In this document: positions 1 through 26,494 of the stretch, piece after piece | Numbering within the stretch: position 1 is the stretch's first letter | Layout: every line of letters starts with the position of its first letter | Origin: Auanema rhodensis | Lineage: Eukaryota; Animalia; Nematoda | Reading direction: 5' to 3' | Assembly (NCBI GenBank): GCA_964057225.1 | Contig: OZ059897.1 | Location: 6,696,001-6,760,000, forward strand | Length of the DNA: 64,000 bases | The notes under the pieces: model-generated | What the model was told of the DNA's origin: nothing | The model's input: only the letters and a program-made list of their open reading frames with translations | Database searches by the model: none | Made by a program: the position numbers and the translations under genes

Positions 1-3000
1 GTGGGATTTGAACCCACGCCCTCATACGAGGACCAGAACACCCAACTCTATACACAGAGTAAGAGATGATGAACAACTCTTGAGTCTGGCGCCTTAGACC
101 ACTCGGCCATCCGTGCTTCGAACACCGTCATTTGTGATCAATAGATGATCGTACCAAGTACAGATGAGCAAGAAAAAGTTGAAGAAAACCTTAAAAGGTA
201 TGCACGGAGTGGGATTTGAACCCACGCCCTCATACGAGGACCAGAACACCCAACTCTATACACAGAGTAAGAGATGATGAACAACTCTTGAGTCTGGCGC
301 CTTAGACCACTCGGCCATCCGTGCTTCGAACACCGTCATTTGTGATCAATAGATGATCGTACCAAGTACAGATGAGCAAGAAAAAGTTGAAGAAAACCTT
401 AAAAGGTATGCACGGAGTGGGATTTGAACCCACGCCCTCATACGAGGACCAGAACACCCAACTCTATACACAGAGTAAGAGATGATGAACAACTCTTGAG
501 TCTGGCGCCTTAGACCACTCGGCCATCCGTGCTTCGAACACCGTCATTTGTGATCAATAGATGATCGTACCAAGTACAGATGAGCAAGAAAAAGTTGAAG
601 AAAACCTTAAAAGGTATGCACGGAGTGGGATTTGAACCCACGCCCTCATACGAGGACCAGAACACCCAACTCTATACACAGAGTAAGAGATGATGAACAA
701 CTCTTGAGTCTGGCGCCTTAGAGCACTCGGCCATCCGTGCTTCGAACACCGTCATTTGTGATCAATAGATGATCGTACCAAGTACAGATGAGCAAGAAAA
801 AGTTGAAGAAAACCTTAAAAGGTATGCACGGAGTGGGATTTGAACCCACGCCCTCATACGAGGACCAGAACACCCAACTCTATACACAGAGTAAGAGATG
901 ATGAACAACTCTTGAGTCTGGCGCCTTAGACCACTCGGCCATCCGTGCTTCGAACACCGTCATTTGTGATCACTAGATGATCGTACCAAGTACAGATGAG
1001 CAAGAAAAAGTTGAAGAAAACCTTAAAAGGTATGCACGGAGTGGGATTTGAACCCACGCCCTCATACGAGGACCAGAACACCCAACTCTATACACAGAGT
1101 AAGAGATGATGAACAACTCTTGAGTCTGGCGCCTTAGAGCACTCGGCCATCCGTGCTTCGAACACCGTCATTTGTGATCAATAGATGATCGTACCAAGTA
1201 CAGATGAGCAAGAAAAAGTTGAAGAAAACCTTAAAAGATATGCACGAAGTGGGATTTGAACCCACGCCCTCATACGAGGACCAGAACACCCAACTCTATA
1301 CACAGAGTAAGAGATGATGAACAACTCTTGAGTCTGGCGCCTTAGACCACTCGGCCATCCGTGCTTCGAACACCGTCATTTGTGATCACTAGATGATCGT
1401 ACCAAGTACAGATGAGCAAGAAAAAGTTGAAGAAAACCTTAAAAGGTATGCACGGAGTGGGATTTGAACCCACGCCCTCATACGAGGACCAGAACACCCA
1501 ACTCTATACACAGAGTAAGAGATGATGAACAACTCTTGAGTCTGGCGCCTTAGAGCACTCGGCCATCCGTGCTTCGAACACCGTCATTTGTGATCAATAG
1601 ATGATCGTACCAAGTACAGATGAGCAAGAAAAAGTTGAAGAAAACCTTAAAAGATATGCACGGAGTGGGATTTGAACCCACGCCCTCATACGAGGACCAG
1701 AACACCCAACTCTATACACAGAGTAAGAGATGATGAACAACTCTTGAGTCTGGCGCCTTAGACCACTCGGCCATCCGTGCTTCGAACACCGTCATTTGTG
1801 ATCAATAGATGATCGTACCAAGTACAGATGAGCAAGAAAAAGTTGAAGAAAACCTTAAAAGGTATGCACGGAGTGGGATTTGAACCCACGCCCTCATACG
1901 AGGACCAGAACACCCAACTCTATACACAGAGTAAGAGATGATGAACAACTCTTGAGTCTGGCGCCTTAGACCACTCGGCCATCCGTGCTTCGAACACCGT
2001 CATTTGTGATCAATAGATGATCGTACCAAGTACAGATGAGCAAGAAAAAGTTGAAGAAAACCTTAAAAGGTATGCACGGAGTGGGATTTGAACCCACGCC
2101 CTCATACGAGGACCAGAACACCCAACTCTATACACAGAGTAAGAGATGATGAACAACTCTTGAGTCTGGCGCCTTAGAGCACTCGGCCATCCGTGCTTCG
2201 AACACCGTCATTTGTGATCAATAGATGATCGTACCAAGTACAGATGAGCAAGAAAAAGTTGAAGAAAACCTTAAAAGGTATGCACGGAGTGGGATTTGAA
2301 CCCACGCCCTCATACGAGGACCAGAACACCCAACTCTATACACAGAGTAAGAGATGATGAACAACTCTTGAGTCTGGCGCCTTAGAGCACTCGGCCATCC
2401 GTGCTTCGAACACCGTCATTTGTGATCACTAGATGATCGTACCAAGTACAGATGAGCAAGAAAAAGTTGAAGAAAACCTTAAAAGGTATGCACGGAGTGG
2501 GATTTGAACCCACGCCCTCATACGAGGACCAGAACACCCAACTCTATACACAGAGTAAGAGATGATGAACAACTCTTGAGTCTGGCGCCTTAGACCACTC
2601 GGCCATCCGTGCTTCGAACACCGTCATTTGTGATCAATAGATGATCGTACCAAGTACAGATGAGCAAGAAAAAGTTGAAGAAAACCTTAAAAGGTATGCA
2701 CGGAGTGGGATTTGAACCCACGCCCTCATACGAGGACCAGAACACCCAACTCTATACACAGAGTAAGAGATGATGAACAACTCTTGAGTCTGGCGCCTTA
2801 GACCACTCGGCCATCCGTGCTTCGAACACCGTCATTTGTGATCAATAGATGATCGTACCAAGTACAGATGAGCAAGAAAAAGTTGAAGAAAACCTTAAAA
2901 GGTATGCACGGAGTGGGATTTGAACCCACGCCCTCATACGAGGACCAGAACACCCAACTCTATACACAGAGTAAGAGATGATGAACAACTCTTGAGTCTG

Positions 3001-4614
3001 GCGCCTTAGACCACTCGGCCATCCGTGCTTCGAACACCGTCATTTGTGATCAATAGATGATCGTACCAAGTACAGATGAGCAAGAAAAAGTTGAAGAAAA
3101 CCTTAAAAGGTATGCACGGAGTGGGATTTGAACCCACGCCCTCATACGAGGACCAGAACACCCAACTCTATACACAGAGTAAGAGATGATGAACAACTCT
3201 TGAGTCTGGCGCCTTAGACCACTCGGCCATCCGTGCCTCGAACACCGTCATTTGTGATCAATAGATGATCGTACCAAGTACAGATGAGCAAGAAAAAGTT
3301 GAAGAAAACCTTAAAAGGTATGCACGGAGTGGGATTTGAACCCACGCCCTCATACGAGGACCAGAACACCCAACTCTATACACAGAGTAAGAGATGATGA
3401 ACAACTCTTGAGTCTGGCGCCTTAGACCACTCGGCCATCCGTGCTTCGAACACCGTCATTTGTGATCAATAGATGATCGTACCAAGTACAGATGAGCAAG
3501 AAAAAGTTGAAGAAAACCTTAAAAGGTATGCACGGAGTGGGATTTGAACCCACGCCCTCATACGAGGACCAGAACACCCAACTCTATACACAGAGTAAGA
3601 GATGATGAACAACTCTTGAGTCTGGCGCCTTAGACCACTCGGCCATCCGTGCTTCGAACACCGTCATTTGTGATCAATAGATGATCGTACCAAGTACAGA
3701 TGAGCAAGAAAAAGTTGAAGAAAACCTTAAAAGGTATGCACGGAGTGGGATTTGAACCCACGCCCTCATACGAGGACCAGAACACCCAACTCTATACACA
3801 GAGTAAGAGATGATGAACAACTCTTGAGTCTGGCGCCTTAGACCACTCGGCCATCCGTGCTTCGAACACCGTCATTTGTGATCAATAGATGATCGTACCA
3901 AGTACAGATGAGCAAGAAAAAGTTGAAGAAAACCTTAAAAGGTATGCACGGAGTGGGATTTGAACCCACGCCCTCATACGAGGACCAGAACACCCAACTC
4001 TATACACAGAGTAAGAGATGATGAACAACTCTTGAGTCTGGCGCCTTAGACCACTCGGCCATCCGTGCTTCGAACACCGTCATTTGTGATCAATAGATGA
4101 TCGTACCAAGTACAGATGAGCAAGAAAAAGTTGAAGAAAACCTTAAAAGGTATGCACGGAGTGGGATTTGAACCCACGCCCTCATACGAGGACCAGAACA
4201 CCCAACTCTATACACAGAGTAAGAGATGATGAACAACTCTTGAGTCTGGCGCCTTAGACCACTCGGCCATCCGTGCCTCGAACACCGTCATTTGTGATCA
4301 ATAGATGATCGTACCAAGTACAGATGAGCAAGAAAAAGTTGAAGAAAACCTTAAAAGGTATGCACGGAGTGGGATTTGAACCCACGCCCTCATACGAGGA
4401 CCAGAACACCCAACTCTATACACAGAGTAAGAGATGATGAACAACTCTTGAGTCTGGCGCCTTAGACCACTCGGCCATCCGTGCTTCGAACACCGTCATT
4501 TGTGATCAATAGATGATCGTACCAAGTACAGATGAGCAAGAAAAAGTTGAAGAAAACCTTAAAAGGTATGCACGGAGTGGGATTTGAACCCACGCCCTCA
4601 TACGAGGACCAGAA
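1..4614 (-). tRNA. Block of 21 complete tRNA-Leu(CAA) genes plus 2 partial copies (left of the gap)
   Basis: Copies at 201..324, 409..532, ... 4361..4484; partial copies at 1..116 (window edge) and 4569..4614 (cut by the gap). Confidence 0.95.
201..324 (-). tRNA. tRNA-Leu(CAA) with 40-nt intron (representative first complete copy)
   Basis: Reverse complement: GCACGGA TG GCC GAGTGGTCTAA GGC G CCAGA CT CAA G [AGTTGTTCATCATCTCTTACTCTGTGTATAGAGTTGGGTG] T TCTGG TCCTCGTATGAGGGC GTGGG TTCAAAT CCCAC TCCGTGC A. All stems pair; long variable arm; intron at the canonical 37/38 site; A and B boxes intact; T4 and T5 runs just downstream. Confidence 0.97.
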
Positions 4615-4814
4615 NNNNNNNNNNNNNNNNNNNNNNNNNNNNNNNNNNNNNNNNNNNNNNNNNNNNNNNNNNNNNNNNNNNNNNNNNNNNNNNNNNNNNN
4701 NNNNNNNNNNNNNNNNNNNNNNNNNNNNNNNNNNNNNNNNNNNNNNNNNNNNNNNNNNNNNNNNNNNNNNNNNNNNNNNNNNNNNNNNNNNNNNNNNNNN
4801 NNNNNNNNNNNNNN
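4615..4814. other. Assembly gap (200 N) inside the array
   Basis: Exactly 200 N, a round placeholder size, so the true array length is unknown. Confidence 0.99.
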
Positions 4815-4815
4815 A

Positions 4816-7800
4816 TGCACGGAGTGGGATTTGAACCCACGCCCTCATACGAGGACCAGAACACCCAACTCTATACACAGAGTAAGAGATGATGAACAAC
4901 TCTTGAGTCTGGCGCCTTAGACCACTCGGCCATCCGTGCTTCGAACACCGTCATTTGTGATCAATAGATGATCGTACCAAGTACAGATGAGCAAGAAAAA
5001 GTTGAAGAAAACTTTAAAAGGTATGCACGGAGTGGGATTTGAACCCACGCCCTCATACGAGGACCAGAACACCCAACTCTATACACAGAGTAAGAGATGA
5101 TGAACAACTCTTGAGTCTGGCGCCTTAGAGCACTCGGCCATCCGTGCTTCGAACACCGTCATTTGTGATCAATAGATGATCGTACCAAGTACAGATGAGC
5201 AAGAAAAAGTTGAAGAAAACCTTAAAAGGTATGCACGGAGTGGGATTTGAACCCACGCCCTCATACGAGGACCAGAACACCCAACTCTATACACAGAGTA
5301 AGAGATGATGAACAACTCTTGAGTCTGGCGCCTTAGACCACTCGGCCATCCGTGCTTCGAACACCGTCATTTGTGATCAATAGATGATCGTACCAAGTAC
5401 AGATGAGCAAGAAAAAGTTGAAGAAAACCTTAAAAGGTATGCACGGAGTGGGATTTGAACCCACGCCCTCATACGAGGACCAGAACACCCAACTCTATAC
5501 ACAGAGTAAGAGATGATGAACAACTCTTGAGTCTGGCGCCTTAGAGCACTCGGCCATCCGTGCTTCGAACACCGTCATTTGTGATCAATAGATGATCGTA
5601 CCAAGTACAGATGAGCAAGAAAAAGTTGAAAAAAACCTTAAAAGGTATGCACGGAGTGGGATTTGAACCCACGCCCTCATACGAGGACCAGAACACCCAA
5701 CTCTATACACAGAGTAAGAGATGATGAACAACTCTTGAGTCTGGCGCCTTAGACCACTCGGCCATCCGTGCTTCGAACACCGTCATTTGTGATCAATAGA
5801 TGATCGTACCAAGTACAGATGAGCAAGAAAAAGTTGAAGAAAACCTTAAAAGGTATGCACGGAGTGGGATTTGAACCCACGCCCTCATACGAGGACCAGA
5901 ACACCCAACTCTATACACAGAGTAAGAGATGATGAACAACTCTTGAGTCTGGCGCCTTAGACCACTCGGCCATCCGTGCTTCGAACACCGTCATTTGTGA
6001 TCAATAGATGATCGTACCAAGTACAGATGAGCAAGAAAAAGTTGAATAAAACCTTAAAAGGTATGCACGGAGTGGGATTTGAACCCACGCCCTCATACGA
6101 GGACCAGAACACCCAACTCTATACACAGAGTAAGAGATGATGAACAACTCTTGAGTCTGGCGCCTTAGACCACTCGGCCATCCGTGCTTCGAACACCGTC
6201 ATTTGTGATCAATAGATGATCGTACCAAGTACAGATGAGCAAGAAAAAGTTGAAGAAAACCTTAAAAGGTATGCACGGAGTGGGATTTGAACCCACGCCC
6301 TCATACGAGGACCAGAACACCCAACTCTATACACAGAGTAAGAGATGATGAACAACTCTTGAGTCTGGCGCCTTAGACCACTCGGCCATCCGTGCTTCGA
6401 ACACCGTCATTTGTGATCAATAGATGATCGTACCAAGTACAGATGAGCAAGAAAAAGTTGAAGAAAACCTTAAAAGGTATGCACGGAGTGGGATTTGAAC
6501 CCACGCCCTCATACGAGGACCAGAACACCCAACTCTATACACAGAGTAAGAGATGATGAACAACTCTTGAGTCTGGCGCCTTAGACCACTCGGCCATCCG
6601 TGCTTCGAACACCGTCATTTGTGATCAATAGATGATCGTACCAAGTACAGATGAGCAAGAAAAAGTTGAAGAAAACCTTAAAAGGTATGCACGGAGTGGG
6701 ATTTGAACCCACGCCCTCATACGAGGACCAGAACACCCAACTCTATACACAGAGTAAGAGATGATGAACAACTCTTGAGTCTGGCGCCTTAGACCACTCG
6801 GCCATCCGTGCTTCGAACACCGTCATTTGTGATCAATAGATGATCGTACCAAGTACAGATGAGCAAGAAAAAGTTGAATAAAACCTTAAAAGGTATGCAC
6901 GGAGTGGGATTTGAACCCACGCCCTCATACGAGGACCAGAACACCCAACTCTATACACAGAGTAAGAGATGATGAACAACTCTTGAGTCTGGCGCCTTAG
7001 AGCACTCGGCCATCCGTGCTTCGAACACCGTCATTTGTGATCAATAGATGATCGTACCAAGTACAGATGAGCAAGAAAAAGTTGAAGAAAACCTTAAAAG
7101 GTATGCACGGAGTGGGATTTGAACCCACGCCCTCATACGAGGACCAGAACACCCAACTCTATACACAGAGTAAGAGATGATGAACAACTCTTGAGTCTGG
7201 CGCCTTAGACCACTCGGCCATCCGTGCTTCGAACACCGTCATTTGTGATCAATAGATGATCGTACCAAGTACAGATGAGCAAGAAAAAGTTGAAGAAAAC
7301 CTTAAAAGGTATGCACGGAGTGGGATTTGAACCCACGCCCTCATACGAGGACCAGAACACCCAACTCTATACACAGAGTAAGAGATGATGAACAACTCTT
7401 GAGTCTGGCGCCTTAGACCACTCGGCCATCCGTGCTTCGAACACCGTCATTTGTGATCAATAGATGATCGTACCAAGTACAGATGAGCAAGAAAAAGTTG
7501 AAGAAAACTTTAAAAGGTATGAACGGAGTGGGATTTGAACCCACGCCCTCATACGAGGACCAGAACACCCAACTCTATACACAGAGTAAGAGATGATGAA
7601 CAACTCTTGAGTCTGGCGCCTTAGAGCACTCGGCCATCCGTGCTTCGAACACCGTCATTTGTGATCAATAGATGATCGTACCAAGTACAGATGAGCAAGA
7701 AAAAGTTGAATAAAACCTTAAAAGGTATGCACGGAGTGGGATTTGAACCCACGCCCTCATACGAGGACCAGAACACCCAACTCTATACACAGAGTAAGAG

Positions 7801-10800
7801 ATGATGAACAACTCTTGAGTCTGGCGCCTTAGACCACTCGGCCATCCGTGCTTCGAACACCGTCATTTGTGATCAATAGATGATCGTACCAAGTACAGAT
7901 GAGCAAGAAAAAGTTGAAGAAAACCTTAAAAGGTATGCACGGAGTGGGATTTGAACCCACGCCCTCATACGAGGACCAGAACACCCAACTCTATACACAG
8001 AGTAAGAGATGATGAACAACTCTTGAGTCTGGCGCCTTAGACCACTCGGCCATCCGTGCTTCGAACACCGTCATTTGTGATCAATAGATGATCGTACCAA
8101 GTACAGATGAGCAAGAAAAAGTTGAAGAAAACCTTAAAAGGTATGCACGGAGTGGGATTTGAACCCACGCCCTCATACGAGGACCAGAACACCCAACTCT
8201 ATACACAGAGTAAGAGATGATGAACAACTCTTGAGTCTGGCGCCTTAGACCACTCGGCCATCCGTGCTTCGAACACCGTCATTTGTGATCACTAGATGAT
8301 CGTACTAAGTACAGATGAGCAAGAAAAAGTTGAAGAAAACCTTAAAAGGTATGCACGGAGTGGGATTTGAACCCACGCCCTCATACGAGGACCAGAACAC
8401 CCAACTCTATGCACAGAGTAAGAGATGATGAACAACTCTTGAGTCTGGCGCCTTAGACCACTCGGCCATCCGTGCTTCGAACACCGTCATTTGTGATCAA
8501 TAGATGATCGTACCAAGTACAGATGAGCAAGAAAAAGTTGAAGAAAACCTTAAAAGGTATGCACGGAGTGGGATTTGAACCCACGCCCTCATACGAGGAC
8601 CAGAACACCCAACTCTATACACAGAGTAAGAGATGATGAACAACTCTTGAGTCTGGCGCCTTAGACCACTCGGCCATCCGTGCTTCGAACACCGTCATTT
8701 GTGATCAATAGATGATCGTACCAAGTACAGATGAGCAAGAAAAAGTTGAAGAAAACCTTAAAAGGTATGCACGGAGTGGGATTTGAACCCACGCCCTCAT
8801 ACGAGGACCAGAACACCCAACTCTATACACAGAGTAAGAGATGATGAACAACTCTTGAGTCTGGCGCCTTAGACCACTCGGCCATCCGTGCTTCGAACAC
8901 CGTCATTTGTGATCAATAGATGATCGTACGAAGTACAGATGAGCAAGAAAAAGTTGAAGAAAACCTTAAAAGGTATGCACGGAGTGGGATTTGAACCCAC
9001 GCCCTCATACGAGGACCAGAACACCCAACTCTATACACAGAGTAAGAGATGATGAACAACTCTTGAGTCTGGCGCCTTAGACCACTCGGCCATCCGTGCT
9101 TCGAACACCGTCATTTGTGATCACTAGATGATCGTACTAAGTACAGATGAGCAAGAAAAAGTTGAAGAAAACCTTAAAAGGTATGCACGGAGTGGGATTT
9201 GAACCCACGCCCTCATACGAGGACCAGAACACCCAACTCTATGCACAGAGTAAAAGATGATGAACAACTCTTGAGTCTGGCGCCTTAGACCACTCGGCCA
9301 TCCGTGCTTCGAACACCGTCATTTGTGATCAATAGATGATCGTACCAAGTACAGATGAGCAAGAAAAAGTTGAAGAAAACCTTAAAAGGTATGCACGGAG
9401 TGGGATTTGAACCCACGCCCTCATACGAGGACCAGAACACCCAACTCTATACACAGAGTAAGAGATGATGAACAACTCTTGAGTCTGGCGCCTTAGACCA
9501 CTCGGCCATCCGTGCTTCGAACACCGTCATTTGTGATCAATAGATGATCGTACCAAGTACAGATGAGCAAGAAAAAGTTGAAGAAAACCTTAAAAGGTAT
9601 GCACGGAGTGGGATTTGAACCCACGCCCTCATACGAGGACCAGAACACCCAACTCTATACACAGAGTAAGAGATGATGAACAACTCTTGAGTCTGGCGCC
9701 TTAGACCACTCGGCCATCCGTGCTTCGAACACCGTCATTTGTGATCAATAGATGATCGTACCAAGTACAGATGAGCAAGAAAAAGTTGAAGAAAACCTTA
9801 AAAGGTATGCACGGAGTGGGATTTGAACCCACGCCCTCATACGAGGACCAGAACACCCAACTCTATACACAGAGTAAGAGATGATGAACAACTCTTGAGT
9901 CTGGCGCCTTAGACCACTCGGCCATCCGTGCTTCGAACACCGTCATTTGTGATCAATAGATGATCGTACCAAGTACAGATGAGCAAGAAAAAGTTGAAGA
10001 AAACTTTAAAAGGTATGCACGGAGTGGGATTTGAACCCACGCCCTCATACGAGGACCAGAACACCCAACTCTATACACAGAGTAAGAGATGATGAACAAC
10101 TCTTGAGTCTGGCGCCTTAGAGCACTCGGCCATCCGTGCTTCGAACACCGTCATTTGTGATCAATAGATGATCGTACCAAGTACAGATGAGCAAGAAAAA
10201 GTTGAAGAAAACCTTAAAAGGTATGCACGGAGTGGGATTTGAACCCACGCCCTCATACGAGGACCAGAACACCCAACTCTATACACAGAGTAAGAGATGA
10301 TGAACAACTCTTGAGTCTGGCGCCTTAGACCACTCGGCCATCCGTGCTTCGAACACCGTCATTTGTGATCAATAGATGATCGTACCAAGTACAGATGAGC
10401 AAGAAAAAGTTGAAGAAAACCTTAAAAGGTATGCACGGAGTGGGATTTGAACCCACGCCCTCATACGAGGACCAGAACACCCAACTCTATACACAGAGTA
10501 AGAGATGATGAACAACTCTTGAGTCTGGCGCCTTAGACCACTCGGCCATCCGTGCTTCGAACACCGTCATTTGTGATCAATAGATGATCGTACCAAGTAC
10601 AGATGAGCAAGAAAAAGTTGAAGAAAACCTTAAAAGGTATGCACGGAGTGGGATTTGAACCCACGCCCTCATACGAGGACCAGAACACCCAACTCTATAC
10701 ACAGAGTAAGAGATGATGAACAACTCTTGAGTCTGGCGCCTTAGACCACTCGGCCATCCGTGCTTCGAACACCGTCATTTGTGATCAATAGATGATCGTA

Positions 10801-13800
10801 CCAAGTACAGATGAGCAAGAAAAAGTTGAAGAAAACCTTAAAAGGTATGCACGGAGTGGGATTTGAACCCACGCCCTCATACGAGGACCAGAACACCCAA
10901 CTCTATACACAGAGTAAGAGATGATGAACAACTCTTGAGTCTGGCGCCTTAGACCACTCGGCCATCCGTGCTTCGAACACCGTCATTTGTGATCAATAGA
11001 TGATCGTACCAAGTACAGATGAGCAAGAAAAAGTTGAAGAAAACCTTAAAAGGTATGCACGGAGTGGGATTTGAACCCACGCCCTCATACGAGGACCAGA
11101 ACACCCAACTCTATACACAGAGTAAGAGATGATGAACAACTCTTGAGTCTGGCGCCTTAGACCACTCGGCCATCCGTGCTTCGAACACCGTCATTTGTGA
11201 TCAATAGATGATCGTACCAAGTACAGATGAGCAAGAAAAAGTTGAAGAAAACCTTAAAAGGTATGCACGGAGTGGGATTTGAACCCACGCCCTCATACGA
11301 GGACCAGAACACCCAACTCTATACACAGAGTAAGAGATGATGAACAACTCTTGAGTCTGGCGCCTTAGACCACTCGGCCATCCGTGCTTCGAACACCGTC
11401 ATTTGTGATCAATAGATGATCGTACCAAGTACAGATGAGCAAGAAAAAGTTGAAGAAAACCTTAAAAGGTATGCACGGAGTGGGATTTGAACCCACGCCC
11501 TCATACGAGGACCAGAACACCCAACTCTATACACAGAGTAAGAGATGATGAACAACTCTTGAGTCTGGCGCCTTAGAGCACTCGGCCATCCGTGCTTCGA
11601 ACACCGTCATTTGTGATCAATAGATGATCGTACCAAGTACAGATGAGCAAGAAAAAGTTGAAGAAAACCTTAAAAGGTATGCACGGAGTGGGATTTGAAC
11701 CCACGCCCTCATACGAGGACCAGAACACCCAACTCTATACACAGAGTAAGAGATGATGAACAACTCTTGAGTCTGGCGCCTTAGACCACTCGGCCATCCG
11801 TGCTTCGAACACCGTCATTTGTGATCAATAGATGATCGTACCAAGTACAGATGAGCAAGAAAAAGTTGAAGAAAACCTTAAAAGGTATGCACGGAGTGGG
11901 ATTTGAACCCACGCCCTCATACGAGGACCAGAACACCCAACTCTATACACAGAGTAAGAGATGATGAACAACTCTTGAGTCTGGCGCTTTAGACCACTCG
12001 GCCATCCGTGCTTCGAACACCGTCATTTGTGATCAATAGATGATCGTACCAAGTACAGATGAGCAAGAAAAAGTTGAAGAAAACCTTAAAAGGTATGCAC
12101 GGAGTGGGATTTGAACCCACGCCCTCATACGAGGACCAGAACACCCAACTCTATACACAGAGTAAGAGATGATGAACAACTCTTGAGTCTGGCGCCTTAG
12201 ACCACTCGGCCATCCGTGCTTCGAACACCGTCATTTGTGATCAATAGATGATCGTACCAAGTACAGATGAGCAAGAAAAAGTTGAAGAAAACCTTAAAAG
12301 GTATGCACGGAGTGGGATTTGAACCCACGCCCTCATACGAGGACCAGAACACCCAACTCTTTACACAGAGTAAGAGATGATGAACAACTCTTGAGTCTGG
12401 CGCCTTAGACCACTCGGCCATCCGTGCTTCGAACACCGTCATTTGTGATCAATAGATGATCGTACCAAGTACAGATGAGCAAGAAAAAGTTGAAGAAAAC
12501 CTTAAAAGGTATGCACGGAGTGGGATTTGAACCCACGCCCTCATACGAGGACCAGAACACCCAACTCTATACACAGAGTAAGAGATGATGAACAACTCTT
12601 GAGTCTGGCGCCTTAGACCACTCGGCCATCCGTGCTTCGAACACCGTCATTTGTGATCAATAGATGATCGTACCAAGTACAGATGAGCAAGAAAAAGTTG
12701 AAGAAAACCTTAAAAGGTATGCACGGAGTGGGATTTGAACCCACGCCCTCATACGAGGACCAGAACACCCAACTCTATACACAGAGTAAGAGATGATGAA
12801 CAACTCTTGAGTCTGGCCCTTAGACCACTCGGCCATCCGTGCTTCGAACACCGTCATTTGTGATCAATAGATGATCGTACCAAGTACAGATGAGCAAGAA
12901 AAAGTTGAAGAAAACCTTAAAAGGTATGCACGGAGTGGGATTTGAACCCACGCCCTCATACGAGGACCAGAACACCCAACTCTATACACAGAGTAAGAGA
13001 TGATGAACAACTCTTGAGTCTGGCGCCTTAGACCACTCGGCCATCCGTGCTTCGAACACCGTCATTTGTGATCAATAGATGATCGTACCAAGTACAGATG
13101 AGCAAGAAAAAGTTGAAGAAAACCTTAAAAGGTATGCACGGAGTGGGATTTGAACCCACGCCCTCATACGAGGACCAGAACACCCAACTCTATACACAGA
13201 GTAAGAGATGATGAACAACTCTTGAGTCTGGCGCCTTAGACCACTCGGCCATCCGTGCTTCGAACACCGTCATTTGTGATCAATAGATGATCGTACCAAG
13301 TACAGATGAGCAAGAAAAAGTTGAAGAAAACCTTAAAAGGTATGCACGGAGTGGGATTTGAACCCACGCCCTCATACGAGGACCAGAACACCCAACTCTA
13401 TACACAGAGTAAGAGATGATGAACAACTCTTGAGTCTGGCGCCTTAGACCACTCGGCCATCCGTGCTTCGAACACCGTCATTTGTGATCAATAGATGATC
13501 GTACCAAGTACAGATGAGCAAGAAAAAGTTGAATAAAACCTTAAAAGGTATGCACGGAGTGGGATTTGAACCCACGCCCTCATACGAGGACCAGAACACC
13601 CAACTCTATACACAGAGTAAGAGATGATGAACAACTCTTGAGTCTGGCGCCTTAGACCACTCGGCCATCCGTGCTTCGAACACCGTCATTTGTGATCAAT
13701 AGATGATCGTACCAAGTACAGATGAGCAAGAAAAAGTTGAAGAAAACCTTAAAAGGTATGCACGGAGTGGGATTTGAACCCACGCCCTCATACGAGGACC

Positions 13801-16800
13801 AGAACACCCAACTCTATACACAGAGTAAGAGATGATGAACAACTCTTGAGTCTGGCGCCTTAGACCACTCGGCCATCCGTGCTTCGAACACCGTCATTTG
13901 TGATCAATAGATGATCGTACCAAGTACAGATGAGCAAGAAAAAGTTGAAGAAAACCTTAAAAGGTATGCACGGAGTGGGATTTGAACCCACGCCCTCATA
14001 CGAGGACCAGAACACCCAACTCTATACACAGAGTAAGAGATGATGAACAACTCTTGAGTCTGGCGCCTTAGACCACTCGGCCATCCGTGCTTCGAACACC
14101 GTCATTTGTGATCAATAGATGATCGTACCAAGTACAGATGAGCAAGAAAAAGTTGAAGAAAACCTTAAAAGGTATGCACGGAGTGGGATTTGAACCCACG
14201 CCCTCATACGAGGACCAGAACACCCAACTCTATACACAGAGTAAGAGATGATGAACAACTCTTGAGTCTGGCGCTTTAGACCACTCGGCCATCCGTGCTT
14301 CGAACACCGTCATTTGTGATCAATAGATGATCGTACCAAGTACAGATGAGCAAGAAAAAGTTGAAGAAAACCTTAAAAGGTATGCACGGAGTGGGATTTG
14401 AACCCACGCCCTCATACGAGGACCAGAACACCCAACTCTATACACAGAGTAAGAGATGATGAACAACTCTTGAGTCTGGCGCCTTAGACCACTCGGCCAT
14501 CCGTGCTTCGAACACCGTCATTTGTGATCAATAGATGATCGTACCAAGTACAGATGAGCAAGAAAAAGTTGAAGAAAACCTTAAAAGGTATGCACGGAGT
14601 GGGATTTGAACCCACGCCCTCATACGAGGACCAGAACACCCAACTCTTTACACAGAGTAAGAGATGATGAACAACTCTTGAGTCTGGCGCCTTAGACCAC
14701 TCGGCCATCCGTGCTTCGAACACCGTCATTTGTGATCAATAGATGATCGTACCAAGTACAGATGAGCAAGAAAAAGTTGAAGAAAACCTTAAAAGGTATG
14801 CACGGAGTGGGATTTGAACCCACGCCCTCATACGAGGACCAGAACACCCAACTCTATACACAGAGTAAGAGATGATGAACAACTCTTGAGTCTGGCGCCT
14901 TAGACCACTCGGCCATCCGTGCTTCGAACACCGTCATTTGTGATCAATAGATGATCGTACCAAGTACAGATGAGCAAGAAAAAGTTGAAGAAAACCTTAA
15001 AAGGTATGCACGGAGTGGGATTTGAACCCACGCCCTCATACGAGGACCAGAACACCCAACTCTATACACAGAGTAAGAGATGATGAACAACTCTTGAGTC
15101 TGGCCCTTAGACCACTCGGCCATCCGTGCTTCGAACACCGTCATTTGTGATCAATAGATGATCGTACCAAGTACAGATGAGCAAGAAAAAGTTGAAGAAA
15201 ACCTTAAAAGGTATGCACGGAGTGGGATTTGAACCCACGCCCTCATACGAGGACCAGAACACCCAACTCTATACACAGAGTAAGAGATGATGAACAACTC
15301 TTGAGTCTGGCGCCTTAGACCACTCGGCCATCCGTGCTTCGAACACCGTCATTTGTGATCAATAGATGATCGTACCAAGTACAGATGAGCAAGAAAAAGT
15401 TGAAGAAAACCTTAAAAGGTATGCACGGAGTGGGATTTGAACCCACGCCCTCATACGAGGACCAGAACACCCAACTCTATACACAGAGTAAGAGATGATG
15501 AACAACTCTTGAGTCTGGCGCCTTAGACCACTCGGCCATCCGTGCTTCGAACACCGTCATTTGTGATCAATAGATGATCGTACCAAGTACAGATGAGCAA
15601 GAAAAAGTTGAAGAAAACCTTAAAAGGTATGCACGGAGTGGGATTTGAACCCACGCCCTCATACGAGGACCAGAACACCCAACTCTATACACAGAGTAAG
15701 AGATGATGAACAACTCTTGAGTCTGGCGCCTTAGACCACTCGGCCATCCGTGCTTCGAACACCGTCATTTGTGATCAATAGATGATCGTACCAAGTACAG
15801 ATGAGCAAGAAAAAGTTGAATAAAACCTTAAAAGGTATGCACGGAGTGGGATTTGAACCCACGCCCTCATACGAGGACCAGAACACCCAACTCTATACAC
15901 AGAGTAAGAGATGATGAACAACTCTTGAGTCTGGCGCCTTAGACCACTCGGCCATCCGTGCTTCGAACACCGTCATTTGTGATCAATAGATGATCGTACC
16001 AAGTACAGATGAGCAAGAAAAAGTTGAAGAAAACCTTAAAAGGTATGCACGGAGTGGGATTTGAACCCACGCCCTCATACGAGGACCAGAACACCCAACT
16101 CTATACACAGAGTAAGAGATGATGAACAACTCTTGAGTCTGGCGCCTTAGACCACTCGGCCATCCGTGCTTCGAACACCGTCATTTGTGATCAATAGATG
16201 ATCGTACCAAGTACAGATGAGCAAGAAAAAGTTGAAGAAAACCTTAAAAGGTATGCACGGAGTGGGATTTGAACCCACGCCCTCATACGAGGACCAGAAC
16301 ACCCAACTCTATACACAGAGTAAGAGATGATGAACAACTCTTGAGTCTGGCGCCTTAGACCACTCGGCCATCCGTGCTTCGAACACCGTCATTTGTGATC
16401 AATAGATGATCGTACCAAGTACAGATGAGCAAGAAAAAGTTGAAGAAAACCTTAAAAGGTATGCACGGAGTGGGATTTGAACCCACGCCCTCATACGAGG
16501 ACCAGAACACCCAACTCTATACACAGAGTAAGAGATGATGAACAACTCTTGAGTCTGGCGCCTTAGACCACTCGGCCATCCGTGCTTCGAACACCGTCAT
16601 TTGTGATCAATAGATGATCGTACCAAGTACAGATGAGCAAGAAAAAGTTGAAGAAAACCTTAAAAGGTATGCACGGAGTGGGATTTGAACCCACGCCCTC
16701 ATACGAGGACCAGAACACCCAACTCTATACACAGAGTAAGAGATGATGAACAACTCTTGAGTCTGGCCCTTAGACCACTCGGCCATCCGTGCTTCGAACA

Positions 16801-17206
16801 CCGTCATTTGTGATCAATAGATGATCGTACCAAGTACAGATGAGCAAGAAAAAGTTGAAGAAAACCTTAAAAGGTATGCACGGAGTGGGATTTGAACCCA
16901 CGCCCTCATACGAGGACCAGAACACCCAACTCTATACACAGAGTAAGAGATGATGAACAACTCTTGAGTCTGGCCCTTAGACCACTCGGCCATCCGTGCT
17001 TCGAACACCGTCATTTGTGATCAATAGATGATCGTACCAAGTACAGATGAGCAAGAAAAAGTTGAAGAAAACCTTAAAAGGTATGCACGGAGTGGGATTT
17101 GAACCCACGCCCTCATACGAGGACCAGAACACCCAACTCTATACACAGAGTAAGAGATGATGAACAACTCTTGAGTCTGGCCCTTAGACCACTCGGCCAT
17201 CCGTGC
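4816..17206 (-). tRNA. Block of 60 complete tRNA-Leu(CAA) genes (right of the gap), some with damaging variants
   Basis: Copies from 4816..4939 to 17084..17206, same cloverleaf as the representative copy. Confidence 0.95.
16670..17206 (-). pseudogene. Three terminal tRNA-Leu(CAA) copies with a 1-bp D-stem deletion (probable pseudogenes)
   Basis: On +, 'tctggcgcctta' becomes 'tctggccctta', removing C25 of the D stem; units are 207 bp. The same lesion is in the copies at 12720 and 15007. Confidence 0.75.
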
Positions 17207-19494
17207 TTCGAACACCGTCATTTGTGATCAATAGATGATCGTACCAAGTACAGATGAGCAAGAAAAAGTTGAATAAAACCTTAAAAGGTATGCACGGTAT
17301 TATACTCGTAAAGGGACGCGAAAATCCAATTTTTTTCCAAATAACTAATCGCTTATAGCATCTTATCTATCGTTAAAATCTAGGAAGTTTCTTGTATATG
17401 TTTTCATTCTTCAAATAGTTTGTAACGTGCTCGCAAGATGTATCAAAATTCTTTTCATGATTTTTGCTCGTATTCGGTGAATAGTAGACAGTTATTCAAA
17501 AAAGTTTTAATTTATTTGTTCTTTTTTTGTCGTTTTGTTTTTCAATATTTACACTAAAATGTTTCAAACTTTTATGAATAAATAAGTTTGAAACATTTTT
17601 GAATTTGAATTGAACTGCTCAGAAGATAATGATGTGTTGATTTTTCTTATTTTTTTCACCTGAATTCCTGTACATGTTCATTTTGAATTAAGAAAAATTT
17701 TGAATTAAAAAATGCTTCTTATTTTTGTTATAAAAATCACAAAATTTATGAAGATTGTCAAAGAATTGTTGCATTTCGTAATTTAGCATCTCTCGCTCAA
17801 CCAACCAGTTCATCTGAAGAAGTGACCATGTAGGCAAAGCAAAGGCCGTTTCATCCATCCGATGCTGCTGTTCATTTCTCACTTCTGCCTCACTGTATAG
17901 GCTTAGGCATATGTAGTATGTCCTAGAAATTCTTTTTTCTTTCTTTCACTCCATTTTCTATTCATATTCATTATTTCATTTATTTGTTTCATTATTCATC
18001 GCTTGAGCTACTTTAGATGTCCCTTGTTCTAAATCATCTCTCATCATAACGATTAGCTTTTTTTGGCTTTTAGACCATCAACTTCAATCAGCTTTTGTTA
18101 AATTTCTATCATCATACAATGATTGTCTTTTCACTTAAATAGTCTGCATCTACTTTCTTTCATTGTTTTTGCTTCGCCTGTTTTTCTAAACCCTCAATCG
18201 GAAATCGTCAAGTAGTTTGCAATAATGGTTCTGAAGAAGCTAGATATTATTTTTTGAACTTGATAATTCATGCAAAAAAACGTCTTAATTGTTAAATTTT
18301 ATTTGAAATAACGACTTGAATTTATACATGTTGAAGAATTTTTAATTTTCTCTTTTTTTGTCATGCTAATCGTCACCTATCTAATCTAACCTACTTCTCT
18401 TTCACGGCTTCAGCTCATCTCCTTCAACGTCTTCGTACATCTTTTGTTGTTTAGCAATTTTTTTCCTCACATAGTTCATCATCTACCCGTTTTATGTTCA
18501 TTTTCTCCCAATTTCCTCACAAAATGCTCTCTGACCTCGTTTTTCCCTTCGTAGCGATTCTTAAACCTGTCAGAGAACAACTGATTCCGTTCTACTCGTT
18601 GTCCTCTTCGATTTGATTTTTAAAACCAACTTTCTCAAGAAAAAAGTGTGTTATATCCAACCTAAAAAACTTTTTCGTATCTTTGTTTGGAATATCCGAG
18701 AGCTTAAACGTTATGTATCAGCAGTTCGTTACCATGATGAGATCTTCGTCTTTATATTCATAACCATAACCTTTCATGTTTCTAGGTTTCTCTTTTTCTG
18801 ATCATTTGAATGAAATAAATGAATTTCGATTTCTTACAAAAACCACTCTTTAATCTAAATTGTCAAAGTAAATAATCCCAAGACCTATTCGGTGGGGGCA
18901 TTCTCGAACAAGTTATAATCAAGAAATTATAAACTAAAGCTTTCATGAACTGTGTGGGGGGTAATGGATTAAGAAACAACTTTCTGATCACATTTAGCGA
19001 TTTTTACATCTTATACCGATACTATCAATTGCTTTGTCTTCCAGCTGACATACCATTTTCGCATTTTCTTGTTCCATTAGCTCATCCAGTTAGGCTGAAT
19101 CAGTTATATATCTTGTCTTATCTGCACTTCCACATAGCCTTGATCTTTCATTTAAAATACATTAAAAATGATTTTGAAAAAAAAAAAGAATTAAGAAATC
19201 CATTCAGTCAATAGATTTGAAATAGGCTTATATTTTTTGACAACCAATCGCCTTTTGATACAATATGCAACAGGCCCTTCGTACCTAATTGGACTTATGT
19301 CACATTGTGACGGCATTATAGCCATCATCACCCCACAGACCTCAATTTAGTTTACGAATTGTTCTAAGTATTTGGATCGTTTAGTTTCTATTAAATCCTC
19401 TCCTTACCACTTGTCAGATTCTGCTTCTTACCTACTAATAACGTCTATGTTTCAGATATTTTTCTAAGTAACTCGCAATAATAATAAAAATAAA

Positions 19495-22123
19495 ATGCGG
19501 GACTTTGTCCCTTTCCTGGTTTTATCAACAGTTCAGTTAGTTTATACTCATATAGCTCTAACGTTTCCTGAAGTTCGATATCCTCCTTTGGATTTTCTTG
19601 ATACATCACGCACAATGGGGCCATGTGGTGTGCCAAAACCGAGAGACCGTAAGTGTAGACCAGTTTTCAATTCTAAATATCTTCTATTAGCCCATTATAC
19701 AAATTTAATTGTCGGCACAACATATAATTTCACTTGGAGAATGCAATATCCTCATCAAGTTTGTATTTAAGATTTACTTCCTATAGTAATGTGAGTTGTA
19801 GGGTGGTTATCGGTTACTTCTTCTTGATCCAACAGGTGAAATAGTTGAAAGTTTATCACCTATGAATGGTATTGAATTCACTGGAACGGAAGATGCAACG
19901 TAATACAAAACAAAATTTTCTAGTTTATTTGCTAAATTCTTTGTTCTAGTATTCAATCAGAAAGCATAAAGTTTTCTCGAGCTTGCCTTGAATGTACAGT
20001 GATTCTTGAACGTCAAGCTCTAGAATGGGGAAAGTCGTATCGCTTCCGAAGCTGTGCTGATGTCAATATACTTCAAGCAGCACCAGGTAATTCATTTCTC
20101 TTAAAACAACTTCTCTACAACAAGACTGAATTGGTCTTCTTCAGCTGAATCCGTTTGTAACGATCGAGGAACAATGGAGAATGGACAATGTCTATGTGAA
20201 AATGGTTATACGGGAGATATATGCCAATATCTAGGTAACAACAAGTGAAAATATCTAGAAAAAAAGAAAGGAAACCAGCGAAATGAACCGATTAACTCAA
20301 TTTTGACATTGAAAATGAAAGCCCACGTGTTTTTTACGTGAAATAACGTTTTGCAGCTCATTGTGAAAGGGATTCTGACTGTATGAACGGAGGAAAATGC
20401 GTGTCAGAATCAAATTCATTAATTTCCAAAACATGCTACTGTTCATATGGATATTTCGGAAAAAATTGTGACCAGAGTAAGTTGAAGACTGAAATTCTTC
20501 CATAACAAGTTTGAAAAAAAACTTTTCATTGTTAATTCCAGATTTCAATCGTCCGAATGATGCATGCTTTGCTTATGCAAATAGGGATGAAAAATCGTTT
20601 GACAAATATGAAATGTTCAATGAAAATTGCTACAACAAAGAATCTTTTAACGAAAAAGATTATATTTATTTTAGAAAAGTGAAAGTATGAAGTTTAATTT
20701 TATATTAACTTATTCTAAATTTGTTTTTAATTTTATTAGACTGATATCGAAATTATTCTGGATTTTGAATCAACATCATGGCTATCACTCGGCTGGAGAC
20801 CTGAAGGATTAGATACATCATGTCGATTATTTCCTGATTTAGAAGGTATTCTCTTTTTTCTTGTAGATAATATCGTTCCATGAAAACATTATTTCATAGA
20901 AATTTTAATCTTAATCTACCGTTTTATGAGCCTTTCTTTTTATTTTTCACCAAAAGAGGAAGAAAATCCAATTGTATCCCAAATAAAAACACAAAACTTC
21001 ATTAAATTTGATTTATATTTTTCTAACTTTTTAAGGGGTTCGTTCTAAACGTTCTCAATTTGATGCTCCACCCACTGTTTTCAACAATGTAAGAAGATAT
21101 AATCTTAATTATAATTTAGAAATCAATATTTTGTTCAGGATGAAGTTCCACCCATAGTAAATAGAGAAGATGATCTACCTCCAATTAGAGTTGCTCAAGA
21201 AGGTCCACGACCTAGAATGCCAGAGAACAATGGATTACGTATGTTTCGATATTTCAGAACTATCATCTCTTCAAATCATTATAGTGAAAAGTGCATTAGA
21301 TGCTCCATTGCACGCTATGGACTGCATTGATATCGTAGTCGGAGCAGTACGTGATGGTAGACTTCGTATCAATGATATGTATTCAAGAGACAGATCAACA
21401 CCTATTGACGATTTTTGGTAAAGGATTGGCTTGTGGGGTTTTAAATTATATTTTTCGTTTTCAGGTATGAGGGAGAGATATCCTTCCTCGCTGCATATGG
21501 TATTGAAGTCGATGGTCGAACGGTTGTTATGTTCCGTAGGTGGATGCAAGGTTTCTCTTCCTATGAATCATCCTCATATCTATAGATTGAAATTATAGAG
21601 ATTGAACCAACTGATCATCCATTGGGACCGGGAAAACAATTCGTTATTTGGGCTAAAGGTCAGATGCAAGGCTCCTATAGCCATGGAGCTTCTTCTGGGC
21701 TTGATGGAAAACATAGCAATCAAGAATTTTATGTTGACGATGTTTTAAAATATCATGGAAGTATGGTTTATTGCTTCAATTTATTTTGAATTAAATAGCT
21801 GCAGATCGCAATCGCGGAGTATATCCCCTGGATTTCACAGTTCCACCGGCTAAGTATCCAAAACCAGATGATGTAGCATTTGGAGTGCATACTGCCCAAG
21901 GTTGAATTTCAGCTTTTTTTGAGAAAAACAACAGAAAGAATACGATTCAGGGCACCCAAAACAAAGACCATTAGAAATGTCTTCAACTAGAACACAAGAA
22001 GCAACAACAGAAACACCTGCATCAGTCAAGCCAAAGATAGCCGACACTAATGAGCCTGACGGAGCATCACTTTTTTCATTTACGATACTCACATTATGCA
22101 TATCATTCTATTTATACGTATAA
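19495..22123 (+). CDS. Secreted, probably GPI-anchored protein: N-terminal His-brace (LPMO-like) domain + 2 EGF-like + DOMON domain (nahoda-like); multi-exon
   Basis: Spliced translation: signal peptide MRDFVPFLVLSTVQLVYT|HIALTFPEVRYPPLDFLDTSRTMGPCG...WRMQYPHQGGY...CLECTVILERQALEWGKSYRFRSCADVNI. EGF: CNDRGTMENGQCLCENGYTGDIC and CMNGGKC...CYCSYGYFGKNC. DOMON: WLSLGW...HAMDCIDIVVG...DMYSRDRSTP...VMFRR...VIWAKG...KYHG. Ser/Thr stalk and hydrophobic tail GASLFSFTILTLCISFYLYV*. Confidence 0.88.
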
Positions 22124-22175
22124 ATAAATAATTTATTTGTTAAATAAAAATTATCTCAATAGTTTCATTTGATTA

Positions 22176-23174
22176 TTACTTTGATTTAGAAAAGTCAACA
22201 CATTTGTAAGTACATGTACAATCACATCCACATCTGCCACTCCTCTTCTTATGAATTACACGTACAGGTTCTACTCCATTTGCACATTGTTCAATTCCAC
22301 ATTGACAATCACATTCTTCACAGTCTGCTAAAATAGAATTTTATGAAGATGACGAAGAAGATAATCCATACTATCAATAGCTATCAATGGAAATGCAACA
22401 GATTCAAAGGGACAGATTTCCGTCTTCCACAGCAAATCAACCAGTGTACGATTCTGATCATATTGATGCCAACATTGAACTCCACGATATAACTAAAGTA
22501 TTTAGATGAAAAGTATCAAGTATGAAAGACATCATTCTTACTAAATCTGATACAATTGAATGTGAAAAATCCTCTTTCGCATTGTTCAATTGGTCATGAA
22601 TACATCCTGTTGCATCTATGGTAACTGATGGCGCCGTGCAACAAATTGGATCCAGACTATAGTATCATAGAGTGTACGGTATTTTTGGTTCTGTTTTATT
22701 ATCTTACACAAGAGCTTGAGTTACATTTTCTAAGAGAAAAGCGTGGAAACCACCGAGAAAAGTATCACCAGTACAGCCTGAGATTCAAAAAAAGTCATGA
22801 AAAAACATTGGAAGTCGTACAAACCTTCAAGTAATCCTGTACATTTGGGTATGTTCTGTTGATGTGAACAAGTTGTTTCTTCTGGTAAAGCTATTTGCTC
22901 ACACTCAATTGTTAAAGATCCTAATACACTATAATGCGTTTTAGCTCGACGAATACCAGAAACTCTAAAACCTTTATGACACTCCAGAGCCTGCAATTAT
23001 ATGGAAAATCAAACAAAGTTTTTCGAATAAAGTTTATGAAACTTTTTTTTCAGTTTCTTGATTATCAACTTAATGAATTATTATTCGAAAACTTACATAA
23101 TCAACGTCGGCTAAAACTACTTCTGATAATGATAGAATAAGTAAGAGAGATAAAAGACGAAACCGATGAAGCAT
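22176..23174 (-). CDS. Secreted cysteine-rich protein of unknown function; multi-exon
   Basis: Exon 1 MLHRFRLLSLLLILSLSEVVLADVDY|gtaag (signal peptide). Later exons: ALECHKGFRVSGSLTIECEQ...KCTGLLEGLYDFQCFF; LDPICCTAPSVTIDATGC; YRGVQCWHQY...EICPF; DCEECDCQCGIEQCANG...GRCGCDCTCTYKCVDFSKSK*. Confidence 0.75.
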
Positions 23175-23734
23175 GATCTAGACTGCGAACATGTAGGCTT
23201 GCAAGGCCAGACGAAGGTGAAAACGAGACCAACAGGCTATTGGAAAACGAATGAAACGGGCTGTATTGTTCATTTTAGGATCAGATGAAATTAAAGGAAG
23301 AAAGACTGTGATTACCACAGAGGATAGAGAAAGCAAATTCAATGCAGTCAAGATAACGAGAGGGATAGATTGACAGAAGACAGTATAGAGATAGAGATAG
23401 AAGAAATATATCAGAGAATCAGTGTCGAACGATGAAGAACCGTTAGTCTATTGATATGACTCAGAATAGATTGGATTCAATTGTTGGACGCGTGATAGTT
23501 ACGCGACAATCCAGTAGGAGAGGACAAGTCTTTCGGCTTGGTCATCCTTTTGTATACACAACGTTGCCGACCGTAACAACTTTATGAGACAAGAGAAACA
23601 TTTTTGGAACAAGCTTAAGAATATATTCATTGATGACTCACTATATTTAAATTGAATAAAAGATAAAAATGGTTCATTAGTGCTTATTACACAATCAAAC
23701 TTTATGTATCAGGTCTTCTGGCTATTGAAGAGCG

Positions 23735-24184
23735 TCATGAAGCTTTAAGTGCATCTGACAGAAGAACAGCAAGCTTTCGTTGTTCTTTCCTCCATCTAAT
23801 TCGGCGATTTTGAAACCAAACTTTTATCTGCAACATATTAGCATAAGAAGGGAATCTTAGAAAAACTAAAAAAATTGTTATCAAGAGTACCTGAGATATT
23901 CCAATATGCAGTTGTTCTGCTAGGCGTTCGCGATCGCTTCCCACCAAGTATTGCTGTTTTTGGAATTCAGCTTCTAGCACAGCTAGCTGCCATGCCGTGA
24001 ATGTTGTTCGATTCCGGCGTTTAAGATCATGATCGCGATCTGATGATATTGACGACATGGGAGGTTCTGTTGTAGAAGCCACAAGTACAGATGAATAAAT
24101 AGGTGATGAGACAGAAAATGGTAGACAATATACCGTCCGGGAACTTGATAATTGTCCGCAAACCGACGTATTTTCCTCTATCAT
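23735..24184 (-). CDS. Homeobox transcription factor, Vax/Noto/Emx-like (ceh-7-like); one intron at 23828-23890; the start may be the internal Met near 24058
   Basis: RRNRTTFTAWQLAVLEAEFQKQQYLVGSDRERLAEQLHIGISQ|IKVWFQNRRIRWRK; TATAAA on the minus strand near 24220. Confidence 0.9.
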   Translation of the reverse strand: MIEENTSVCGQLSSSRTVYCLPFSVSSPIYSSVLVASTTEPPMSSISSDRDHDLKRRNRTTFTAWQLAVLEAEFQKQQYLVGSDRERLAEQLHIGISQVLLITIFLVFLRFPSYANMLQIKVWFQNRRIRWRKEQRKLAVLLSDALKAS

Positions 24185-26463
24185 CTGCCAGCTTTTTTAC
24201 ACAACATCAAGCTAGCTTTATAAGGCCATTAGGCCTAACGCTTTTGACCCAAACATAGCTGTCAATTGAACGACGACAATTGACAATTACAATGAGATAA
24301 ACACAACAATTAAAAAGGCAGAGAGGAGAAATTATATGACAGCAAATGAATGAAGATATGCTATCATTTCAATGCCAGAAGAAGAAAACTCGCCCATTTT
24401 TCACTCAAAAAAAAGCTAATTGCGCCACAATGTGCTGACTTTTATGAGATTCGTTCAAAAAAGAGACCACCAATTTCGATTCTTAAAAAAATAAGTTGGA
24501 ACAAACTATAGCTCAACCTAAATAAATACATGTGTATGGTTGGTTATTGAATAAAATAGATAAAACATGTTAAATAGATTATTAAAGATGAATATAATTA
24601 AAGTTTTGAACTTAATATTCAAAGAATTATCATAAAAATTCAAATTTTCCTCTGTTTATTTCGCATGATCATAAATCACAGAGCGGTTGTATCAAATACT
24701 GATGGGATAGTTTTGTTTTAAAAAGCAACATGAACCTTATTAAAAAACTTTTTTTTCCAAATAAGTATTTCCGCATGACAGTATTCCAATTAAAATTAAG
24801 AAATTTAAAAAGTATATTTAACCAACAAAAAAAAGTTATAATCTATGATCGATAATACATACTATATACATACATACTATATCTGCGTGTATGTATGTGT
24901 GTGTCTATCTCTCAAATTATAATGATATTATTATTATTTTAGACAATATATACATAGATATATATGTACATGTATTTATATATTGATCATGATCATGATT
25001 TTTCATTGTTTATTTGAATTTTTTTCATTCCACATTTTTTCTTTAATCAGTCAAAACTTTTTGCATTCTTAACCAAACAAGATATAGTTCTCTTGTTTCC
25101 AAAATTAAAAAGCATTTTATACAAAAAATCATAATAATTAAGAACCTATTATCGATTTTCACTCTTATGTTTCTAATAATATTTATTAATATTATGATTA
25201 ATAATCCTTTGATCAATGTTTAACTCGGTTTGCAATCATTTTCATACACAAGAAGCTTTGTTTTTCACATTTTTTCAATTTATTATTACATTGAATAAAT
25301 AACGAAGTCTTTTTTTAAAAATCTTTGAATTTGTCATCATAGTACATATTCTTTAATTCATAGAATATCTACCACCAGTTCTAACGGTATGATATCCAGT
25401 TTTGTCTGTGGTCTGTCCTCGTTCGAATATTTTGTTTCTCGATTTAAATGTATTCACTATAGTTATTTATACTTTTCAAGAAGATATTTTTTAAATATAG
25501 TTATGTATGTTTTAGTTTTGCACCTATATTTCCATCGCATGGCATTGTCTCTAATCATCATTCTCTTATCAACCGAATGTTATAGGCTTGTAATTTTCAC
25601 CGGAATACTTTACATTCAACTTATCTGAGTAAATTAAAACCCTTAATTTTGCATATTTTAGTCTTTCTAAGTTGATAAGATGACTATGTTAACTATACAA
25701 TCTAATAACTTCCCTTTGCCTCTTCGAAACAATTTTTTCACAGAAAATTGTATCTGTAAACCTTAAACAAACCTAAAAAACGTATACTGACTCAGCGAAG
25801 TTTCATTGTTGAAAAAACACGCTCAAACTGAATTCTCGAGATTTTTCCTATGATATATTCGTTCGTGTGCTAGATATTTTGAACATCTTCTTCTTAGTAT
25901 AAGCTTTTCCTTTCGTGTAATATCTGTCTAAATGCCACGTGTCAGTCATTATATGAATTTTATGATCCTACGATCTATCTTCACTTAATTTGCTTTTAAA
26001 CATTCCTAATTAATTTTAATTTTTCTATTTTTTTCTTCAAAAGGATCGAAAATCAAACACCGTTTCTTCTGGTATATCTAAATCACGTGTATGTATGAAA
26101 GAAGAAACATCTAGATTGCGAGAGACATAGAGTACAACTGGCAAAAGAAAGATCATTCAAAATGTTTCCAATTGACAATACACATAGAACACAGGTTACA
26201 AGAAAGCTTCCGTAAAGTTCTTTCCATTTAACAGCTTTTAACATTTTTCTTAAATCTTATTCTTCTATTCTTTATATTTTAAACCTTAAGTTTTGCTGTT
26301 TACTTACTGAACAGATGTACAGATGAACGTATTTGTTCGTTTAACTTGAGTTGTGTGAACCACTTCCAAGACGATGTCCTCCTATTTATCTTCTTCTCGC
26401 TCTTCTTATAATATTGATATTTTTGGAAATTTACTAATTTTTCAATGTATCTCCTACTTGTAT

Positions 26464-26467
<4 letters not shown>

Positions 26468-26494
<27 letters not shown>
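26468..26494. repeat. (TA)n microsatellite
   Basis: About 13 TA units read directly. Confidence 0.9.

Follow-up and report, generated by a model that had tools for sequence, protein, structure and literature searches.

Introduction

In Caenorhabditis elegans, the genes for tRNA-Leu(CAA) are few in number and dispersed. Tandem tRNA arrays are already known in the nematode Auanema rhodense: a preprint of August 2026 (bioRxiv 10.64898/2026.08.27.747507) reports 19,554 tRNA loci, only 215 of which are pseudogenes, along with tandem tRNA blocks. In its text, tRNA arrays are named only among the germline-restricted repeats, at a density of less than 20%, and Leu is never mentioned. A strain-specific, X-linked cluster of tRNA genes in A. 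freiburgense (bioRxiv 10.1101/2023.05.16.540925) resembles the array described here in bringing together hundreds of genes (307), but is spread over 137 kb and is much sparser.

Outside the genus, the arrays of Entamoeba (PMC2652664) offer a likeness in their homogeneous, head-to-tail tRNA genes, with a copy number that is unlinked to codon use. There, as many as 5 different tRNAs share a unit, the spacers are STRs, and the arrays are old, genus-wide and proposed to form chromosome ends, whereas the present array has one intron-containing gene per unit, a plain 84-bp spacer and an interstitial position beside genes. On chromosome 1 of Arabidopsis, an array of 27 triplets (PMC2886086) would share with ours an origin by unequal crossing-over, concerted evolution and, as argued for Arabidopsis, neutral drift in copy number; it differs in its three-gene unit, its total of 81 genes and its greater divergence. 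Another animal with tandem tRNA genes is the human, whose tRNA VNTR at 1q23.3 (PMC4041453) varies in copy number; its unit is 7.3 kb long, multi-tRNA and CTCF-bound, and is present in 9-43 copies.

Here we describe an array found at one end of a 64-kb stretch of DNA (‘the window’, by which we mean the whole of the stretch analysed), whose organism is most likely a DNA-eliminating rhabditid, as a first-pass annotation of the locus had supposed. The surprise voiced in that annotation is much reduced, because such arrays occur throughout the genome, this one being one of many, and are already published in outline; what we add is a dense array that apparently sits in retained DNA, together with alleles that can mark its copies. 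Compared with the eliminated tRNA arrays, as the preprint describes them, it stands apart in being 60% tRNA gene by length and apparently soma-retained.

A homotypic array of intron-containing tRNA-Leu(CAA) genes

Tandem Repeats Finder returned a single period-208 array at 1-17297 (83 copies, 96% matches, an N gap included). Parsed into units on the minus strand, it comprises 81 full tRNA-Leu(CAA) genes and, at 1-116, a 5' partial; units are 208 bp long in 76 cases and 207 bp in 5. The array runs off the left edge of the window, so that its left end lies outside. On these counts, and on those of ARAGORN and Rfam, the first-pass figure of at least 81 intron-containing copies with a 208-bp period holds, as do the A and B boxes, intron, T-runs and 84-bp spacer that it had listed for each unit.

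Within the unit, the A box occupies positions 8-18, the intron 39-78 and the B box 104-112. A representative consensus gene of 124 nt, identified by ARAGORN, Rfam and its fold, lies on the minus strand at 16462-16585, with its 5' exon at 16548-16585, A box at 16568-16578, intron at 16508-16547, 3' exon at 16462-16507 and B box at 16474-16482. The 84-bp spacer beyond it (16378-16461, minus strand) contains runs of T4, T4 and T5, starting 5 nt past the gene, that are putative Pol III terminators, as well as another 9-mer resembling a B box, whose span includes +1 of the following gene.

With introns enabled, ARAGORN identifies tRNA-Leu(CAA) and places an intron of 40 nt after position 38; its default mode, in which introns are ignored, finds no tRNA here. 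Rfam RF00005 scores intact copies at 51.9 bits and copies with a one-base deletion in the D-stem at 38.5 bits, and ARAGORN, Rfam and the exon fold agree on a cloverleaf with a CAA anticodon and a long variable arm. The intron sits one base 3' of the anticodon, which the fold and a comparison with C. elegans place at the canonical 37/38 position; the pre-tRNA fold has z = -4.3, and in this predicted precursor fold the 3' end of the intron pairs with the anticodon loop.

Comparison by eye with C. elegans LeuCAA1 (sequence from PMC4536317) found 79 of the 84 exon positions of the consensus to be identical. All five differences are structure-preserving, among them one compensatory change in the variable arm from an A:U to a C:G pair. 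Since the exons match so closely and differ only in ways that keep the structure, the consensus is, as judged from sequence, a conserved tRNA of working type. The C. elegans tRNA-Leu(CAA) genes also resemble the array in intron position and in the 3' end of the intron, which in that species is 32-38 nt long as against 40 nt here (PMC4536317).

Two other identities were considered and set aside. Three calls of ‘tRNA-Tyr’ made by ARAGORN at the array edge are misfolds of copies lacking C26 rather than Tyr genes. A tRNA-derived SINE, or a degenerate tRNA satellite, does not fit a repeat that keeps a full-length cloverleaf and its intron and has no copies in the 46.7-kb flank, where a search for degenerate units also found none. 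A pattern search of JGI metagenomes with the 38-nt 5' exon recovered no nematode arrays; its only two matches are genes without introns that sit among mixed tRNAs in clusters on giant-virus-like DNA.

Read in the sense of transcription, the array starts at its right edge (17291-17298), where unique DNA abuts just the final 7 nt of a tRNA gene. The three copies nearest to this edge (16670-17206, minus strand) each carry C26del, as seen by unit parsing and Rfam, and are probably defective.

Assembly and copy number

The assembly gap (200 N, at 4615-4814) is flanked by gene 5' ends that lie 455 bp apart, or 2x208+39, whereas a continuous array would need 161+208k bases in its place; being out of register by 39 bp, the 200 N must be a placeholder. 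Both sides of the gap show the same unit on the same strand, and have only 2 of the 16 variant alleles in common (G18C and T184G). Because the alleles mostly differ, we take the two sides to be different parts of the array rather than a false duplicate, and it is plausible that the array is continuous across the gap.

[quoted passage not shown] The ratio of spacer to flank contig depth is 377-407x in X1 and 317-337x in X6, values that serve as a rough proxy, good to an order of magnitude only, and not as a copy number. An RNA run (X11) yielded no contig on 17207-18106 and is uninformative.

The first-pass annotation had named read depth as the check on whether a few copies had been inflated by the assembler, and the outcome leaves this reading with practically no credibility. 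It could appeal to the internal gap, to the 48 copies that are identical, and to one exact repeat of a block of 10 units, which may be a local false duplication; in opposition stand the presence of 18 haplotypes, a short-read contig depth that in both studies is some 320-400x that of the flank and exceeds the number of copies assembled, and a variant spacer contig at 8% in X1 that matches the T184G allele carried by 5 of 81 copies in the window. A few-copy artefact is effectively refuted. With the array running off the left end and depth at this level, it is larger than the window shows, as had been claimed; the copy number is at least 81, and probably 200-400. X1, X6 and a third sample, X10, the last at low coverage, are not alike in depth ratio, in the frequencies of spacer variants or in the junctions of the array with unique DNA.

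The depth seen here would also arise if DNA that is eliminated held, elsewhere, a much larger copy of the array, with ~3,000 germline copies over ~650 kb.

Likely retention in the soma

One proposal of the first-pass annotation was that the array is a germline-restricted block, lost from body cells by programmed elimination. The setting lends this some appeal: according to the A. rhodense preprint (bioRxiv 10.64898/2026.08.27.747507), ~61% of the genome is eliminated, tRNA arrays are among the eliminated repeats, and the sites of elimination are palindromic and gain telomeres. Nor does the window reach the far end of the present array.

What can be seen of the locus points the other way. The elimination motif of O. 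tipulae has a GGC-N3-GCC core, to which that of A. rhodense is described as similar; a search of 1-19500 for a palindromic SFE with this O. tipulae core (GGC-N3/4-GCC) found none, the best palindromes near the right edge being AT-rich chance matches, and the window contains no telomere repeats. In both studies the junction contig continues unbroken at flank depth, with no telomeric (TTAGGC) loose ends on it, although contigs can drop such tips. Coverage in A. rhodense is given, in the same source, as ~29x for eliminated and 236x for retained DNA; at an eliminated coverage of ~12%, a figure that comes from a different library, the observed depth ratio would demand ~3,000 germline copies, or ~650 kb. 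Lastly, tRNA genes make up 60% of the array, as against the ‘always <20%’ that the preprint gives for eliminated ncRNA arrays. We therefore regard germline restriction as improbable, and think it very likely that the array is retained in the soma.

Retention would matter for how such arrays are understood, as the preprint traces the accumulation of repeats to poor surveillance of the DNA that is eliminated, an account that does not extend to hundreds of arrayed copies kept by the soma.

Variation among copies

Copies of the unit are strikingly alike: mean divergence from the consensus is 0.27%, 48 copies are identical to it, and there are 18 haplotypes in all. Consensus exons are found in 62 of 81 copies, and a 63rd undamaged copy carries C118T, which gives a G:U pair in the acceptor and is the C. 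elegans state; the earlier estimate of about 63 undamaged copies is thus borne out. Among the remainder, G18C (canonical G19, within the A box) is damaging and present in 11 of 81 copies, C26del in the D-stem is present in 5, the three edge copies among them, and the exon variant G24A in 2. Intron alleles include T65C and T67A.

The weight that had been placed on this intactness does not survive a closer look. Of the 16 alleles, exons hold 5, against an expected 6.5 (P = 0.32, from a test whose power is low at n=16 alleles), the intron 3 and the spacer 8, and random reassignment of the alleles predicts 64.9 +/- 6.0 exon-intact copies against the 62 observed; spacers, for their part, are intact in 61 of 80. 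The intactness of each copy is what neutrality predicts, and reflects recent copying rather than selection copy by copy. As exon variants are not depleted and damaging alleles have spread, we see no selection on individual copies.

Marked copies recur at a spacing of 11 units, four of them being shared in register between two blocks that make up a higher-order duplication at 11388-15961 on the minus strand (copies 7-17 and 18-28 when numbered leftwards from the edge); the permutation P of 0.03 is modest. This spacing offers modest support for multi-unit unequal exchange, of which it would be a signature, with a local duplication made in assembly as the alternative.

Codon demand, synteny and possible functions

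Across 1,920 conserved flanking codons, TTG occurs at 18 per 1000, equal to TTA and to CTT. There is no special demand for UUG, and the copy number is far above demand, as the first-pass annotation had asserted.

This bears directly on the idea of selection for many copies, with the array acting as a ‘dosage device’ for tRNA-Leu(CAA), for tRNA fragments or for circular intron RNA. By their anatomy most copies would seem transcribable, and C. elegans tRNA introns do give rise to circular tricRNAs (PMC4536317). Yet TTG is not enriched, defective alleles have spread and exons are unconstrained among copies, and in Entamoeba copy number shows no link to codon use (PMC2652664); selection for dosage is accordingly hard to credit.

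A different role would be architectural, with dense B boxes selected and the array maintained as a chromatin element: a TFIIIC, condensin or insulator platform, or a pairing landmark. There are two B-box-like sites to a unit, and the true B box is spared by all 16 alleles, although 16 alleles would miss a 9-bp box about half the time by chance. There are precedents for the thought, in that the human tRNA repeat at 1q23.3 has been proposed as a boundary element (PMC4041453) and exaptation of repeat blocks is the subject of speculation in the A. rhodense preprint (bioRxiv 10.64898/2026.08.27.747507). Variation between samples in junctions and variant frequencies sits poorly with a maintained element, as does the lack of any credible tRNA in ~4 kb at the corresponding place in A. 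melissensis, and we consider this role unlikely.

A homeobox ORF beside the array finds its best match in Auanema sp. JU1783 (A. melissensis), on a contig with the same gene order and ~70% nucleotide identity to the flank; similarity extends to 18386 by BLAST and by eye to ~17800, which is 500 bp from the array edge. The window therefore belongs to a different Auanema, almost certainly A. rhodense, and the preprint most likely describes this very genome; three equal DNA runs of 2019, a larger one and RNA runs of 2019 agree with the A. rhodensis data set of PMC6469403. Along the ~4 kb of the A. melissensis contig past the equivalent point there is no credible tRNA, and as far as that ~4 kb shows, the array would be lineage-specific at its present site. 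The first exon of this neighbour also matched two short contigs in other assemblies, which we take to be from parasitic nematodes; they are useless for synteny.

A model for the origin and upkeep of the array

Bringing these observations together, we consider it probable that the array grew in place from a working tRNA gene and is homogenised by unequal exchange, its surplus copies being neutral. We suggest that a spliceable nematode tRNA-Leu(CAA) gene gave rise, through repeated unequal exchange or slippage, to a homotypic tandem array of ~200-400 copies, within a gene-rich arm that is most likely kept by body cells. The same turnover would then keep the array homogeneous, in a form of concerted evolution such as is seen in rDNA and in the tRNA arrays of Arabidopsis and Entamoeba. 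Some subset of copies is probably transcribed by Pol III and supplies tRNA-Leu(CAA); selection would act on the consensus by way of these transcribed copies, leaving individual copies free to drift. The surplus in copy number would be largely neutral, and would express a lineage-wide tendency in Auanema to array its tRNA genes.

A bolder version, which we hold to be doubtful, is that the working tRNA set of Auanema has been reorganised into rDNA-like, soma-retained arrays of single isotypes, the present one supplying most or all tRNA-Leu(CAA), with its output set by silencing of most copies and with a possible further part as a TFIIIC/condensin landmark. Were this so, tRNA supply in an animal would be set by dosage compensation at the level of the array, and not by gene number.

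The exon variants G18C, C26del and G24A, and the intron variants T65C and T67A, are markers by which the copies used by Pol III could be told apart. They also open the question of how well the number of tRNA genes foretells the supply of tRNA where, as in this animal, the gene count is 30-40 times the usual.

Borders of the array and its repeat unit

In contigs assembled from two of the sequencing runs (X1 and X6), spacer position 17210 of the tRNA-Leu(CAA) array is joined to unique DNA, and this junction is a second edge of the array; it represents either the far end of the array or else the border of the gene reported within it. Contigs from a third, low-coverage run (X10) carry three further array/unique junctions, each single-copy, at spacer positions 17236, 17237 and 17241, which suggests insertions that are specific to that sample, with a target duplication of 5-6 bp.

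At the assembly gap, the left contig ends at position 4614, exactly at the 3' splice site of the intron in a partial tRNA copy; this coincidence is probably due to chance. Within the repeat itself, an extra B-box-like 9-mer (16584-16592, minus strand, and at the equivalent place in all units) is formed by the final 7 bases of the spacer and the initial 2 bases of the tRNA gene, such that each 208 bp unit has two B-box-like sites; the additional site at the spacer/gene border may have arisen by chance.

Flanking sequence and related loci

Gene order across 19495-34900 (DOMON-domain gene, 228-aa gene, homeobox, diacylglycerol-kinase-like, eIF3d and Fe-S protein) is the same in the syntenic contig of A. 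melissensis, and two non-coding elements upstream of the DOMON-domain gene, at 17798-17822 and 18523-18606, are conserved between the two species. Further along, a 9-bp palindromic core at 45704-45712 resembles the motif that marks breaks in programmed DNA elimination (GGC-N3-GCC); its arms are weak (4/10), and it sits in gene-rich surroundings, 28 kb from the array.

Dense, mixed tRNA clusters are also found on two JGI metagenome contigs (L004:3170-4830 and L005:93-998), resembling giant-virus DNA, and both contain an intron-less tRNA-Leu(CAA) whose bases 1-38 are identical to the nematode 5' exon.
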